From: Wallemia ichthyophaga EXF-994
Lineage: Eukaryota; Fungi; Basidiomycota
DNA: 32,000 bases
Assembly: GCF_000400465.1 (NCBI RefSeq)
Contig: NW_008806281.1
Span: forward strand, 300,001-332,000
Reading direction: 5' to 3'
Shown: in pieces, positions 3,231 through 29,236 of the stretch
Numbering within the stretch: the stretch's first letter is position 1
Layout: the number at the start of each line of letters is the position of its first letter
Made by a program: the position numbers and the translations under genes
The notes under the pieces: model-generated
The model's input: only the letters and a program-made list of their open reading frames with translations
Told to the model about the DNA's origin: nothing
Databases searched by the model: none

Positions 3231-4241
3231 GGCCGAGCACTTTGCAGGTCAAGGTGAGATAACGAGCGAAGTGAAAATCCAAGATGGTGGATATTGTGCG
3301 GATGGGTAAAACAGAGATAAAATTAACATTTTGAAGTTTAAGAAAACACGCTGATCTATAAATTTCATTCATATTCTCATTACATTCTTCCGATGAGTAC
3401 GATAGATTCCTTCTTGGTGACTTGAATATTGATTTGAGTAATACCATGAATTCAGCCTAACTGTCCTTTCTGAAGTCTCTCAAGCTACATAAGCAGCACA
3501 ATAGATCATTCGCTTCTGTACTAATCTGCCTTGAGGTCATGAGAGGGAAGACCAGGTTCTAAACTGAGTGATTTAGGTAGATCAGGCAGACAATTGAGTA
3601 ATGAAGCTTCTTTGATTCATGAGTGTACCTGTGATCTTCTGTAATTGCTCTGTTCAATCTACTCGGTTATTAAGCGGAGACAGGAGGACCAGCTGAGTAC
3701 CCGAATGATCGATGAAATTACAGCATAAACGGTTTATCCGGGAACTGATTATGTTAGAATAGTTATCATCGTGATCATCCTAGCAGCACTACCTACATGA
3801 AGAACCAGCTGAGTGACTGCTTACCCGTGCTTGCAACAAGTATACATAGAGTATATCTAAGACTTCAATCTGCGCCGAAACCAAGCTAGCGGTGCAAGAT
3901 TTGCACTGAAAGGGCGAGAAATAAACTTTAAGTCACATATTTGCGTTGGCATTCCATCTGGCATAATTCATTAAAAAAATATGTAAGTGTTTATATTAGT
4001 GTTTGACAAAAAGGTACCTCAATATTGAGCTTAACAGTAGCTAAAAAGTAACTCGATTCGTTTGCTAATTCCTATAACGCAATTCTGATAATATTGAAAC
4101 AACACAACACATTCGTGTCTTGCATTCACCTTGACAGAATCGTTGTACTATCGACTTTCAAATATGTGTTCCTTGATTTGCATCTGTTTATTCTAAATGA
4201 ACTCACTTGATATTCATGCCCTTAAGGGTGGTTGGCATGTG

Positions 4242-4326
4242 ATGACGTAACGAAGTTGAGAGCTTTGAATGTTCATGAACATCGGGCCTATACAGAGGCA
4301 TGAAATCAATCTAAAAAGCTATATAA
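4242..4326 (+). promoter_or_regulatory. CRE/ATF-type site and TATA box upstream of the STL1-like gene
   Basis: ATGACGTAA at 4242-4250 and TATATAA at 4320-4326; the ATG is at 4474. Confidence 0.4.
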
Positions 4327-4473
4327 TGTGAATGTTTACTCTTTTCAGTCAATATCATCTGCTACTCGGACTTATCGTGCCGGCAGCAACACCGAACCTG
4401 AGATCACATTATCCCACCCAATTTAAGCATACGACTGCAGACAGAGCTTTGACACTTGACAATAAAGATAACA

Positions 4474-6275
4474 ATGGGATTTCTAAGCGCACTGGATAAA
4501 ATATTGGGTGGATATAACGGATACGCGAGTAGACTCACAGGCAAGAAGTTGGAATATAGTGTAGTAATGTGTGCTGGTGTAGCATTTCTGCTATTCGGGT
4601 ATGGTGAGAGACGTGTTTCTATGGCGTTTTTTATCTCTGATTCGCATCTCGTCCAACAGATCAGGGTGTGATGTCTGGTATCATCACAGAACCATACTTT
4701 ATCAAAACCTTCCCGGAATTTGGAGATGATCCTGACATTAACCCAAAGCAAGCAATCAGCTCACTCTGTGTCGCCATTTACGAAATATACGTAGACAAAT
4801 CTCGAGTAAATCTCCAAACTAAAACAACCACACAGGATGTATGTTCGGATCGGCTGCTGTGATAATTTGGGGAGATCAACTAGGAAGAAGAAGATGCGTC
4901 ATAATTGGTACTTCCATCATGATCGTCGGAGCTGTCACGCAGACAGCTTCTTATGAGTACCGAGAGTTGGTAGCCGGCAGAATTGTTACCGGCATTGGTA
5001 ACGGTATGAATACGAGCACGATTCCGGTCTTGCAGTCAGAAATGGCGCATAAGGATAGAAGAGGCTTCCTTGTGCTTTTCGAAGGCGCGCTAATTAGTGG
5101 CGGCATAGCTATCTCATACCTCGTCAACCTGGGAATGTGGTATATGAATAAAACAGATGCAGAGGTTCCTCATGCATCTGCACAGTGGAGATTTCCCTTT
5201 GGCCTGCAGCTAGCCTTTGCTATTGTAATGCTGTTTGGTATCGCTGTTTTGCCAGAGTCGCCGAGGTGGCTTGCTAAGCACCACAAAGATGACGAGTCTA
5301 TGCACATTTTGTGTAGGCTAAGAGATGGAAATAAAGAAGATACCCACGTTATTCAAGAATACAGTGAGATAAAGGAGGTAGTGTATGCACAAGAGGCTGG
5401 TGGAGAATTTTCCTTCTGGCAGATATTTAGAAATGACGAAAACATGACGCTCTGGAGGACTTCAGTAGCATTTTGTAGTCAAATGTTCCAGCAAATCGGT
5501 AGGTAGTAAGATTTTCACATAGATGTGGCGTTGACGTGAGGTTTAAGGTGGTATCAACCTGGTTACTTACTACAGTACAACGCTATTCCTCAGTATCGGA
5601 CTTGATGAGACAAAGGCACGCATCGTCACAGCGGGAAATGGTGTTGAGTACTTCTTATCAGCTGTAGCGGCATTGTGGCTTATTGACAAAGCCGGAAGAG
5701 TTCCGCTAATGATGGTAGGAAGTTGTATCATGATTATGGCGCTGGTGATGTTGGTCGGATTTCAGTCGACAGGCAGATCAGATCTGGCAGTAGGCAGTGC
5801 AGTCATGCTCTTTGTTTACAATACGGGCTTCGCCATCGGCTGGCTAGGCGTGACATGGCTGTATCCAGCGGAGATCTCCACACTTCGCTCTCGCCATGCG
5901 GTAAATGGTCTTTCGAGCTGTTCGAACTGGCTTTTCAATTACCTCATTGTCCAAATTGCTCCTATATGTCTCGATACTATCGAATGGAAGACATATATTA
6001 TCTTCATCGCGACCAACACGTTTTTCTTGCCAGTGCTTTGGCTCTTCTTCCCAGAAACAAAAGGACACAGCTTGGAGGAGATGGACAAGATATTTGTTAT
6101 GGCACACAAGCAGCGTCGTAATCCTGTATTTGTTGAGAAAGAATATACGAGAGAGTTTGGTAAGCACGCGCAAGGACTAGGAGACCATGAAAAGACTCAG
6201 GTGGCCCACATTGATCGGTTCGATGATCTGCACGGAAGCTCACGTGACTCAGAAAGCGACAAACCCAAGACTTAA
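4474..6275 (+). CDS. STL1: MFS sugar-porter family transporter, STL1-like (candidate glycerol:H+ symporter), 549 aa; exons 4474-4603, 4660-4786, 4834-5498, 5548-6275
   Basis: Motifs LFGYDQGVMSG, GDQLGRR, GIGNGMNTSTIPVLQSE, QWRFP, LPESPRWL, QQIGGINLVTYYS, WLYPAEIS, SNWLFNY and FPETKGHSLEEMD are sugar-porter signatures, with STL1-subfamily features (NTSTIP, YYST). Introns 1 and 3 are GT-AG; intron 2 needs AT-AC ends. The spliced length is 1650 nt with no internal stop. Substrate is inferred. Confidence 0.85.
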
Positions 6276-7334: not shown

Positions 7335-7816
7335 TTGAAAGTTTTCACTCCTAATAGAGTCATGGCGTGGCGCTGAGGGGATATAAAGAAGACAGCATCT
7401 TCTTTATATAAACCACCATCTACATTTGAAACACTATAATGCCAGAACACTTCAAGAAAGCCGAACAAGTCGTGAGTTGTGAACAGTTGCACTAGACATT
7501 TCCTCTAACAACATCAGGTCGATCCAGCTGGCCACGGTATGCCAACCCAGGATAACCTCAACGATAAGTTGATGAGCGAACGCCCAGCAGGCATCGCCGG
7601 TAGTACCACCTCTACCACGGACGCTCCAGGCCCAGTCGACGACAGAACTCAAGAGGAGAAGTACGCAGACTCACAAGCTACTGCCCAAGTAAACAAGGGT
7701 GGTGACAACATCGTCCCTACCCCAGAGCAACAAGCCGACCTCAACAACATGAACGAGCGTCTCTCCAAGTAAAACTGCTCAATAGAAATCAATCCTATAT
7801 TGCTACGCATTTTGTC
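7333..7816 (+). repeat. Direct repeat copy 2 of 807-1279
   Basis: Same orientation, intron retained, one indel of about 11 nt near the left end. Confidence 0.97.
7439..7772 (+). CDS. Small hydrophilic (hydrophilin/LEA-like) protein, 95 aa, copy 2; exons 7439-7471 and 7518-7772
   Basis: Same structure as 901-1234. Four amino-acid differences (K/Q, T/S, V/I, T/A). Confidence 0.75.
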
Positions 7817-16800: not shown

Positions 16801-17467
16801 ATGCACTTTCTTAATCTGCCTGTGGAGGTGATAGAGGAGGTTTATAAACATGCCAGTACAAAGTCTTATATTGCATTAACACAAACGAATCATAGCATGT
16901 ATGCGATTGGACATGCGACATATATGCTCAATTGGATACTATCACGGAGGGTTTCTGTGGAATATGGCGATGAGGATGATACATTTCCATGGTCTCTGTT
17001 TAGAGAAGGCCTCAAACAGACGTCGCTGTGTCCTCGCTGTGCACTAAAGCGGACGAGAAGAATAATGGGTGCTAGTGGCCAGAGTCTTTCGGAGGGGTGT
17101 CAGCGGATACACTTTACACAGGCGCATGCACATATGCACATACACACACAAACACAAACAAATACGCAGAATGATGACGCAACTGAGACAGATATACCTT
17201 CACAGTTGAGCTCGAGGAGGGGCAGTGCAGATAGCGCGTTTTCTTCGCTTAGTAGTGGTGCATTCAGCGAGACAGATGAAGGCGGTGATGATAGGTCGGT
17301 GAGCATTTTCGGTAGAATGAGCTATACTAACAATTCTCAGCGCTGCCCTCACATTGAACACACTTAACACACTCAGCATGATAGAGCAAGATCAAACTGA
17401 TAAATTCAACTGTCTAGCTCACTCTGTCTCACCAGCCGCGGCTTCGATGCTCGCGTGGCTCATGTGA
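16801..17467 (+). CDS. F-box-like protein; the 3' end depends on donor choice (stop at 17367 or 17467)
   Basis: N-terminal MHFLNLPVEVIEEVYKH..YIALTQTNHSMY fits the F-box pattern. An intron with CTAAC..CAG ends at 17340. Donor 17295 gives a tail ending AASMLAWLM*; donor 17299 gives RCPHIEHT*. Confidence 0.5.
17122..17165 (+). repeat. Imperfect CA-rich microsatellite inside the CDS, encoding HAHMHIHTQTQTNTQ
   Basis: GCGCATGCACATATGCACATACACACACAAACACAAACAAATAC. Confidence 0.6.
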
Positions 17468-27791: not shown

Positions 27792-29236
27792 ATGGAAATA
27801 CCTCCACAATACAACCAAGATATCTTTAAATACCTAGATGATCTACTTGAATTCGTTAGCGATGATTATGTCAAGTCATTGATTGAGACCCACACCAGTA
27901 CGTTGAATTTTCAGTGTCTTTGGCCAATCAGAAGCTTATAATTTTAGACAGCGCACGTCTAATGCAGCGAAGGTGGGATAATCACGAAGCATTCTCTGAG
28001 TGGATGCACTGGGCTGAGTCCACCAACACCCACACTTCGCAATGGAAAGATGAGCAGATACGAAGAATTGCTGTTGGTGATATTAGTGAGGAATGGCCGA
28101 TCAGTCTACAGCGTCATGTCACTCGCTGCAACGAACTAGCTGCCCCACGCGCATACCGTAACTCAGAAAAACCTCACACCAAACGGATAAACCTGCGACA
28201 TGGAAAAGTGAATAATCTCGGTATGACTCCAAAAAAGATGCATGAGTGTGAACGATTGTCTACACTCATTGGCAATGACTTCTCCCACCACACCCACCTC
28301 ATCGATGTTGGTAGTGGGCAGGGCTATCTCAGTAGAACACTCAGTCGCCAACCATTCGATTTCGCTGTTCTCGCTGTTGATAGTGATAACAACAATGTAC
28401 AGCGCTCACAGATAACCTCCGAAAGACGCGATGTGGGGCTTACAACGGGCCGATTAGACCATGTCTGCGCTTTTCTCGATAGACAGAGTTTGGAGCGGGT
28501 GAACAGGGAGTGGAAAGCGAAGGGTGATTCTCGGAGTACTCTAATTGGGTTACATCCTTGTGGTGATCTCTCAGTCGAAGTTATAGAGGCATTCATCGAC
28601 GGTATACACGATTACGATGGTCTGGTCTTGGTTAGCTGCTGCTACAATAAGCTGTCACCGCAGAACTTCCCTCTCTCTCAAAAAACCCGCACGCAGATCG
28701 CCCGCCTCGAGCCAGGAAGATTCGTTTGGGAATACGACTACTTTGGTTTGGCAGTGCATACTCTCGCTCATTGGACTATGGAGCCTGAAAAGTATTGGGA
28801 GGTAGCGCGCTTCCCGATGTTTAAACTCCTTTGCAGATCACGCCTAGCTGAGTGTCTGCGTCGCATAGGTCGCCCACACTTCAGCGAAAATCGCCTAGGC
28901 AAACTGCGCGATCGCCATTACAAAGATTGGTGGACTTACAGGAAGGGTGCAGCTGAGAAACTTTCTCTACAACCAGAAGAGTTGGCGGATGACATCGATG
29001 ACGCCTTCTGGGAGCTCATCGATTGGCGCATGAAGGTGTTCTGGACAGCCAAAGCACGCTGTGGTGATATGTTTGAGTCTCTGATACACCTCGATCGCTT
29101 TCTCTACGTTAAGGAGCGCACGGCACATGAACCACACACAACGGTACAAGTGCGACCTATTTTCGACATTGACACAGGCAGTGCTCGCAATCTAGCACTC
29201 ACTGTTGATAGACTTGATAGTAACCAAAGGAAATAG
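27792..29236 (+). CDS. SAM-dependent methyltransferase, METTL25/RRNAD1-like; intron 27898-27947
   Basis: MTPKKMHECERL, IDVGSGQGYLSRTL, VLAVDSD, LIGLHPCGDLS and LVSCCYNKL. An upstream ATG at 27792 joins in frame through a GTACGT..TAG intron. Confidence 0.8.

Follow-up and report, generated by a model that had tools for sequence, protein, structure and literature searches.

The STL1-like locus and its gene model

The window, by which the whole analysed stretch of 32,000 nucleotides (nt) from contig NW_008806281.1 of the basidiomycete Wallemia ichthyophaga EXF-994 is meant throughout, carries an STL1-like sugar transporter gene (4474-6275) whose second intron, at 4787-4833, begins with AT and ends with AC. 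The best database matches of the gene's product are sugar porters of W. ichthyophaga (93% against a differently modelled entry of 530 amino acids (aa)) and of W. mellicola (82%), far above all others, and the same 90% cluster includes EOR01226, deposited in GenBank as "Sugar transporter STL1". EOR01226 is the host gene itself and belongs to the four W. ichthyophaga homologues of the Saccharomyces cerevisiae glycerol/H+ symporter Stl1 that the genome paper lists (Zajc et al., 2013, PMC3849046).

A four-exon model, in which three introns of 56, 47, and 49 nt are removed, yields a product of 549 aa that matches the Pfam family Sugar_tr (PF00083) from profile position 2 to 452 of 452, in a single stretch and with 356 bits. 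The product is accordingly predicted to be a full 549-aa sugar porter with 12 helices, named STL1-like by annotation only and with glycerol/H+ symport as its putative activity. The AT-AC intron lies in the codon for Ile86, within transmembrane helix 2 (TM2; other helices are abbreviated likewise). The features of the gene are given below with the evidence for each; L010 denotes the orthologue from a Wallemia relative, found on a Logan contig from run SRR25399871, dN and dS are non-synonymous and synonymous divergence, and a slash within a sequence marks a splice junction.

4474-4603, + strand: exon 1, with ATG at 4474 (translation and tblastn; colinear with the orthologues of W. mellicola and L010)
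4604-4659, + strand: intron 1, GT-AG, 56 nt, GTGAGA...CTGAT...CAACAG (L010 has an intron at the same position)
4660-4786, + strand: exon 2, with the 3' end ...GCC ATT TAC GAA AT (dN/dS 0.096 against L010 over codons 1-86)
4787-4833, + strand: AT-AC intron, 47 nt, phase 2 within Ile86 (AT/A) (the sole register with a colinear protein; 47-nt gap in W. mellicola; same-ended 47-nt intron in L010)
4787-4797, + strand: 5' splice site, ATACGT followed by AGACA (11 nt identical to L010)
4819-4823, + strand: putative branch site CTAAA (CTTAT in L010), with the presumed branch A at 4822, 12 nt from the intron end (C, T, and the A at -12 conserved)
4824-4833, + strand: 3' end of the intron, ACAACCACAC, with terminal AC (10 nt identical to L010)
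4834-4835, + strand: AG directly after the AC, making CAG at 4833-4835; frameshifting if used as acceptor, exonic in the productive mRNA (sequence reading and enumeration of splice pairs)
4834-5498, + strand: exon 3, starting A GGA TGT ATG and coding for the remainder of TM2 and for GD.LGRR (translation and tblastn)
5499-5547, + strand: intron 3, GT-AG, 49 nt, in W. ichthyophaga only (translation and tblastn)
5548-6275, + strand: exon 4, with the stop codon TAA at 6273-6275 (translation and tblastn)

Removal of 47 nt from the coding sequence

Read directly, positions 4787-4833 run from ATACGTAGAC to AACCACAC and measure 47 nt, and the bases that the preliminary description had quoted for the end of exon 2, for the intron, and for the start of exon 3 are all in place. 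Its claim that excision of this interval restores the expected protein is borne out by colinearity: the sequence VAIYEIGCMFGS, residue for residue like that of the relatives, is obtained solely by removing 4787-4833 or its equivalent 4788-4834, which gives the same mRNA because positions 4787 and 4834 are both A. When all GT-AG, GC-AG, and AT-AC pairs within 4700-4960 that leave the frame open were enumerated, 69 solutions resulted, and every GT-AG or GC-AG solution among them either loses conserved residues (VAIYE, GD.LGRR) or gains intron-encoded ones. It is in this sense that the earlier statement that no GT-AG choice works can be upheld, since canonical pairs with an open frame do exist. 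The dinucleotides GT that had been named as competing donors (4791-4792, 4770-4771, and 4768-4769) and the CAG at 4833-4835 are present, and the stop codon said to arise from the GT at 4768 does form, as TGA, from T4767 and the GA at 4836.

The bare AT-AC pattern is not special in itself, as open-reading-frame-joining "introns" with good donor and branch scores were about as frequent for AT-AC as for control pairs (CT-AC and GT-AC among them). The significance of the intron therefore derives from homology and cross-species conservation and not from the motif. A scan of the window for further AT-AC introns is likewise powerless, with hits at the rate of the control pairs, the best-looking of which (17291-17372) overlaps an obvious GT-AG intron, and a search for RNA structure joining the two splice sites found nothing (fold z-scores of -0.5 and +0.4).

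Conservation of the intron and selection on its flanks

The interval recurs in four other independent assemblies of the species. L009 (GCA_004918315.1) differs from the window at 2 of 1802 nt and has an identical intron, while the Logan assemblies L015 and L016, from other sequencing runs, show 11 differences, one of them inside the intron (a single-nucleotide polymorphism at 4801). The 530-aa NCBI models of many strains contain YVDKSRVNLQTKTTTQD, which is the read-through translation of exactly the 4787-4833 intron. All eight W. mellicola loci are intronless at the site (TAT GAA AT/T GGA TGT), and the alignment gap in W. mellicola comprises exactly these 47 nt, which matches the boundaries of the intron.

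A more distant view is provided by L010, which is closer to W. ichthyophaga than to W. mellicola (dN 0.063 versus 0.12-0.13) but differs from the W. ichthyophaga gene by a dS of 1.09, with 55.5% identity at fourfold-degenerate sites, far beyond within-species variation. For the STL1-like gene the L010 lineage is sister to W. ichthyophaga (dN 0.063, dS about 1.1). The alignment of orthologous introns that the preliminary description had proposed as a check gave, besides the exact gap in the intronless W. mellicola, an L010 intron with the same ends, at the same site and also of 47 nt. Identity between the window and L010 is 11 of 11 over the first bases (ATACGTAGACA) and 10 of 10 over the last, and 12 of 26 (46%, a neutral level) in the middle; the chance of 21 identities among 21 end positions under the neutral rate is about 4e-6, and conservation at either end of the AT-AC intron exceeds that at the ends of the adjacent GT-AG intron.

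Once the 47 nt are removed, neither species has stops or frameshifts in the gene, and L010 encodes an intact protein of 548 aa, whereas reading through the L010 intron leads to a TAA. The dN/dS ratio against L010 is 0.096 over the 86 codons upstream of the intron, 0.052 downstream, and 0.06 for the whole gene. Of the codon differences in the 36 codons directly after the intron (codons 87-122), 12 are synonymous and 3 non-synonymous; 35 of these codons are removed as intron in the 530-aa model. Both flanks evolve under purifying selection and are therefore translated, in frames that only a 47-nt removal joins. The intron ends are under selection, and the intron dates back at least to the divergence of W. 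ichthyophaga and L010. Additional lineages bearing the intron were sought with a 42-aa peptide spanning exon 2 and the read-through, which found only the L010 open reading frame (ORF), and a metagenome scan with the transporter protein returned only relatives at 44% identity.

Intron type

AT-AC introns are removed either by the minor (U12-type) or by the major (U2-type) spliceosome, and the features of the interval point to the latter. Its donor, ATACGT, agrees with the U2-type consensus everywhere save at +1 (T at +2, A at +3, G at +5, T at +6). GTACGT, from which it had been said to differ only by the A at +1, is indeed present at 27898, where it plausibly opens a 51-nt intron, and a donor of the same type, GTACGTAAAC, is used in the W. 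mellicola orthologue. By heuristic means, nine introns could be inferred in the window, with lengths of 45-61 nt apart from a single one in an overall range of 45-78 nt; G occupies +5 in every one of them and T occupies +6 in the majority. Their CTRAY branch motifs precede an A/C-rich ...ACAG 3' end by 11-29 nt, in most cases by 11-20 nt. In the GT at 4791, a competing donor (GTAGAC), neither G at +5 nor T at +6 is present. The middle of the AT-AC intron has diverged but keeps the C, the T, and the A at -12 (CTAAA in the window, CTTAT in L010), so that the CTNA motif 12 nt from the AC is a plausible, putative branch site.

By direct reading, the U12-type donor /ATATCCTT (or /GTATCCTT) is absent, the donor being ATACGTAG and that of the alternative register ATATACGT. 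A branch site of the form TCCTTAAC was likewise absent from the 47 nt of both the window and L010 (CCAAACTAAAAC and GTGCTTATAC, respectively, with only the CT.A core in common). A pan-eukaryotic survey reports Basidiomycota to be without minor introns or minor small nuclear RNAs (snRNAs), in agreement with the background that the preliminary description had invoked. An Rfam scan detected no snRNAs in the 32-kb window, which is too small a part of the genome to be informative.

Interpretation and alternative explanations

Taken together, these observations make it very probable that 4787-4833 is a genuine natural U2-type ("type II") AT-AC spliceosomal intron of the STL1-like gene. The independent assemblies, the conserved ends in L010, the selection on both flanks, and the intronless orthologue all support the corresponding suggestion of the preliminary description; conservation and selection make splicing at these very bases likely, and the major spliceosome would most probably carry it out. 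In the proposed mechanism, the donor would be recognised by U1 and U6 through the positions that fit the consensus, +2 to +6 (TACGT), branching would take place at the conserved CTNA motif (A4822), 12 nt from the 3' end, and cleavage at A4787 would be followed by exon ligation after C4833, at the AC of 4832-4833 and not at the AG two bases on. The AC would be preferred to the AG because a first intron base A requires a terminal C (the first-base/last-base rule, G-G or A-C). The engineered /AT-AC/ intron mentioned as precedent in the preliminary description does splice in yeast according to the literature (Parker and Siliciano, 1993, as cited in PMC5029451).

Several points weigh against this interpretation. 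An exact look-up of the 549-aa product in the protein collection found no entry, and a 100-aa peptide spanning the junction gave matches of at most 61% identity, with no spliced Wallemia fragment among them. Removal of 4788-4834 (TA...CA) yields the identical mRNA and is an equally conserved alternative register, and a third 47-nt register, 4785-4831 (ATATAC...CCAC), is conserved just as well and would place Thr where Ile is expected. The acceptor-like CAG and the GT, which lie 2 nt and 4 nt downstream of the intron ends, respectively, would allow some out-of-frame splicing. The absence of a minor spliceosome in Wallemia, finally, is taken from the literature.

Some of the other explanations dispute that a functional intron of this kind exists. 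Loss of GG from ATAG/GTACGT, with a perfect CAG/G 2 nt downstream, would formally account for the sequence as an ordinary GT-AG intron misread by 2 nt, but the same sequence stands in the window, L009, L015, and L016 and underlies the translations of the NCBI models of many strains, and the AT...AC ends recur in the divergent L010; a sequencing or assembly error, which had been raised earlier as an alternative, was therefore rejected and has a negligible probability. A broken allele, whose intron is no longer productively spliced while the gene decays, would fit the non-canonical ends, the failure of every automatic annotation to make a full protein, and the rearranged, repeat-flanked surroundings of the gene in W. 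ichthyophaga. This second of the earlier alternatives is very unlikely, as it is contradicted by dN/dS ratios, at a dS of about 1.1, of 0.06 overall and of 0.10 in the two exons before the intron, by frames that are intact in both species after the 47-nt removal, and by an intron whose length and both ends were kept while its middle drifted. It is also hard to believe that one of the deposited models is right, even though they stand in GenBank. The 530-aa version treats the 47 nt as coding and loses 35 codons to a GT-AG intron placed at 4839-4942; its frame is open in W. ichthyophaga, but the read-through meets a TAA in L010, and the segment that it skips codes for TM2 and GD.LGRR and has the substitution pattern of coding sequence (synonymous differences outnumber non-synonymous ones by 12 to 3). 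The versions with downstream starts (MFGS, 461 aa; MIVGAV, 435 aa) leave unexplained the purifying selection on exons 1 and 2, which supply Sugar_tr positions 2-60/100, that is, TM1 and TM2.

The remaining alternatives accept the intron and dispute its class or its exact borders. A U12-type intron, perhaps in the register 4785-4831, could be argued from the fact that most AT-AC introns of eukaryotes are of this type (PMC7072748, PMC1557818) and from the match of ATATAC at 4785 to ATATCC in 5 of 6 positions. It is nevertheless extremely improbable, given that the donor and branch-site motifs of the class are missing, that the stretch where the branch site would be expected is unconserved in L010, that surveys of Basidiomycota report neither minor introns nor minor snRNAs, and that this register puts Thr where all relatives carry Ile or Val. 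A U2-type intron with cleavage shifted by a base or two, either TA...CA at 4788-4834 or AT...AC at 4785-4831, is unlikely rather than implausible, both registers being 47 nt long and equally conserved in L010; on the other side, TA-CA is no known productive terminal pair, ATATAC has neither the G at +5 nor the T at +6 of local donors, and the Ile to Thr change of the second register would fall on a position conserved as Ile or Val.

Comparison with known AT-AC introns

The intron is a new instance of an already known, rare class, and it is set apart by its consensus-like donor, by its demonstrable conservation, and by the fact that the protein requires its removal. Only 24 U2-type AT-AC introns were counted among 610,000 introns of five model species (about 0.003%), with the consensus /ATAAGT (Sheth et al., 2006, PMC1557818). 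In an engineered yeast intron, A at the first position blocks ligation at AG and a terminal C rescues it (Parker and Siliciano, 1993, as cited in PMC5029451), and the rule also holds for natural U2-type AT-AC introns of animals (PMC1557818). In fungi, such introns have been hypothesised for xylanase genes of filamentous species (PMC1557818), AT-AC junctions have been seen by RNA sequencing in Fusarium graminearum (PMC3577648) and Trichoderma longibrachiatum (PMC4324775), a nested AT-AC isoform makes up 1-2% for yeast RPL30 (PMC5029451), and a few hundred AT-AC introns are contained in fungal annotations (Frey and Pucker, 2020, PMC7072748).

Closest in kind are the animal U2-type AT-AC introns exemplified by human SCN4A and SCN5A (PMC1557818), which share with the Wallemia intron the AT...AC ends, a U2-type donor with A at +1, the absence of U12 motifs, and borders conserved between species. 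They differ in their consensus (/ATAAGT, as against /ATACGT in Wallemia, which follows the local GTRNGT/GTACGT style), and the Wallemia intron is further distinguished by a basidiomycete host with introns of 45-60 nt and by a frame-breaking CAG only 2 nt past the AC. Splicing of the SCN4A and SCN5A introns by the major spliceosome was shown experimentally, while the Wallemia intron is known from DNA. The engineered S. cerevisiae /AT...AC/ intron represents the same proposed chemistry in an organism that has only the major spliceosome, but, from its citation in PMC5029451, it is a laboratory double mutant, whereas that of Wallemia is natural, required for the protein, and long kept. The cases from Dikarya (RPL30, Fusarium, Trichoderma, and the surveyed annotations) are alike in placing AT-AC borders in fungi without a minor spliceosome, and they rest on RNA where the Wallemia intron is read from DNA; RPL30 is a by-product whose donor departs from the U2 consensus, and the Fusarium, Trichoderma, and annotation cases are survey counts without conservation analysis, in contrast to an obligatory intron with a consensus-like donor that is conserved across species. 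With U12-type AT-AC introns only the terminal dinucleotides are shared, as the Wallemia intron has neither their donor nor their branch site and occurs in a lineage reported to be without the minor spliceosome.

The Wallemia gene thus offers a natural, obligatory AT-AC case in such a lineage, kept over a synonymous divergence of about 1, and a natural test bed both for the first-base/last-base rule and for the choice of 3' splice site where an AG lies 2 nt beyond the AC.

Possible origin of the AT-AC borders

A one-step origin from a GT-AG intron, through the loss of GG suggested in the preliminary description, can be envisaged, though only tentatively. Loss of GG at ...ATAG/GTACGT would have left A at +1 and forced ligation to the AC of ...ACAG/, and in this slide the former acceptor AG would take the place of the lost exonic AG, leaving the mRNA unchanged: the ancestral ...ATAG/GTACGT...ACAG/GA... 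and the present ...AT/ATACGT...AC/AGGA... give identical mRNAs. The surviving CAG may still compete, another idea of the preliminary description, in which case nonsense-mediated decay of part of the transcripts would determine how much glycerol transporter an extreme halophile makes; both steps together are doubtful but conceivable. The ...ACAG 3' end that the slide requires is common among local introns. If true, the slide would be a neutral route from GT-AG to AT-AC that is open to any AG/GT...ACAG/ intron. A GT-AG intron at G/GA was found in none of W. mellicola, Aureobasidium, Cubamyces, Athelia, and Calocera: Aureobasidium is intronless at the site, the Agaricomycetes Cubamyces and Athelia carry a phase-0 intron at Y/E, 5 nt to the 5' side, and the intron of Calocera, in phase 1, is placed 5 nt to the 3' side. 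The ATA at the junction says little about the origin of the intron, because ATA makes up about 20% of the Ile codons in the gene.

Three intron positions fall within 10 nt of the TM2 motif VAIYE[IV]G in basidiomycete homologues, namely Y/E in phase 0 (Cubamyces, Athelia), AT/A (Wallemia), and G/CG in phase 1 (Calocera), with the introns of the homologues at about 887-946 in L011, 896-957 in L013, and 3204-3255 in L012; the clustering reflects either an intron hot spot or intron sliding. Intron turnover within the STL1-like gene has been rapid across Wallemia more generally, as seen when the introns of the window (4604-4659, 5499-5547), of L003 (3119-3167, 3661-3706), and of L010 (4869-4923) are compared. 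The site of intron 1, in phase 1 throughout, is shared by W. ichthyophaga and L010 but is shifted 12 nt towards the 5' end in W. mellicola, which also has a GTACGT intron in the codon for Trp204 that is found in neither of the other two.

Consequences for annotation

The intron has been missed by every public annotation, and no deposited model, whichever of the three kinds it belongs to, is correct. In that of 530 aa the intron is translated and TM2 is skipped, that of 461 aa begins at MFGS, and the reference, EOR01226, is an N-terminally truncated protein of 435 aa that begins at MIVGAV, as compared with 549 aa after correction. The deposited models score 291-317 bits against Sugar_tr and lack profile positions 1-60/100 (their matches start at 60-101), as against the 356 bits of the corrected protein. 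One of the four Stl1 homologues that have been discussed for the most halophilic fungus known is therefore mis-modelled, with TM1-TM2 or TM2 missing, and the 549-aa model is the one to adopt when osmolyte uptake in Wallemia is studied by comparison or through expression. More broadly, gene finders restricted to GT-AG and GC-AG introns silently yield plausible but wrong proteins. The supplements of the genome paper contain no mention of EOR01226, STL1, or AT-AC.

Genomic context

The surroundings of the gene differ between the species. L010 and W. mellicola have a gene for 859-895 aa upstream and genes for PEPCK and endonuclease V downstream, and as its neighbours in W. ichthyophaga are others, the gene must have moved in that species. 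A comparison of window positions 4220-6275 with L010 and L001-L008 showed that what L010 shares is limited to the gene and some 250 nt before its start. In the window, a direct repeat of 458 nt with 97% identity (822-1279 and 7360-7816), each copy of which contains a 77-aa ORF (1001-1234 and 7539-7772), brackets a unit of 6538 bp that comprises a 258-aa ORF on the minus strand (1635-2411) and the STL1-like gene. Several W. ichthyophaga assemblies place the gene on contigs of 6560-6736 bp, approximately one repeat unit, which could reflect either an assembly break at the repeat or a difference in tandem copy number.

Outside Wallemia, the closest relatives of the whole gene (4474-6275) are those of Dothideomycetes (Aureobasidium, Teratosphaeria, and others), with about 50% identity, as compared with about 43-45% for basidiomycetes. 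Judged from these similarities, the affinity could stem from horizontal transfer between halotolerant fungi or from uneven sampling.

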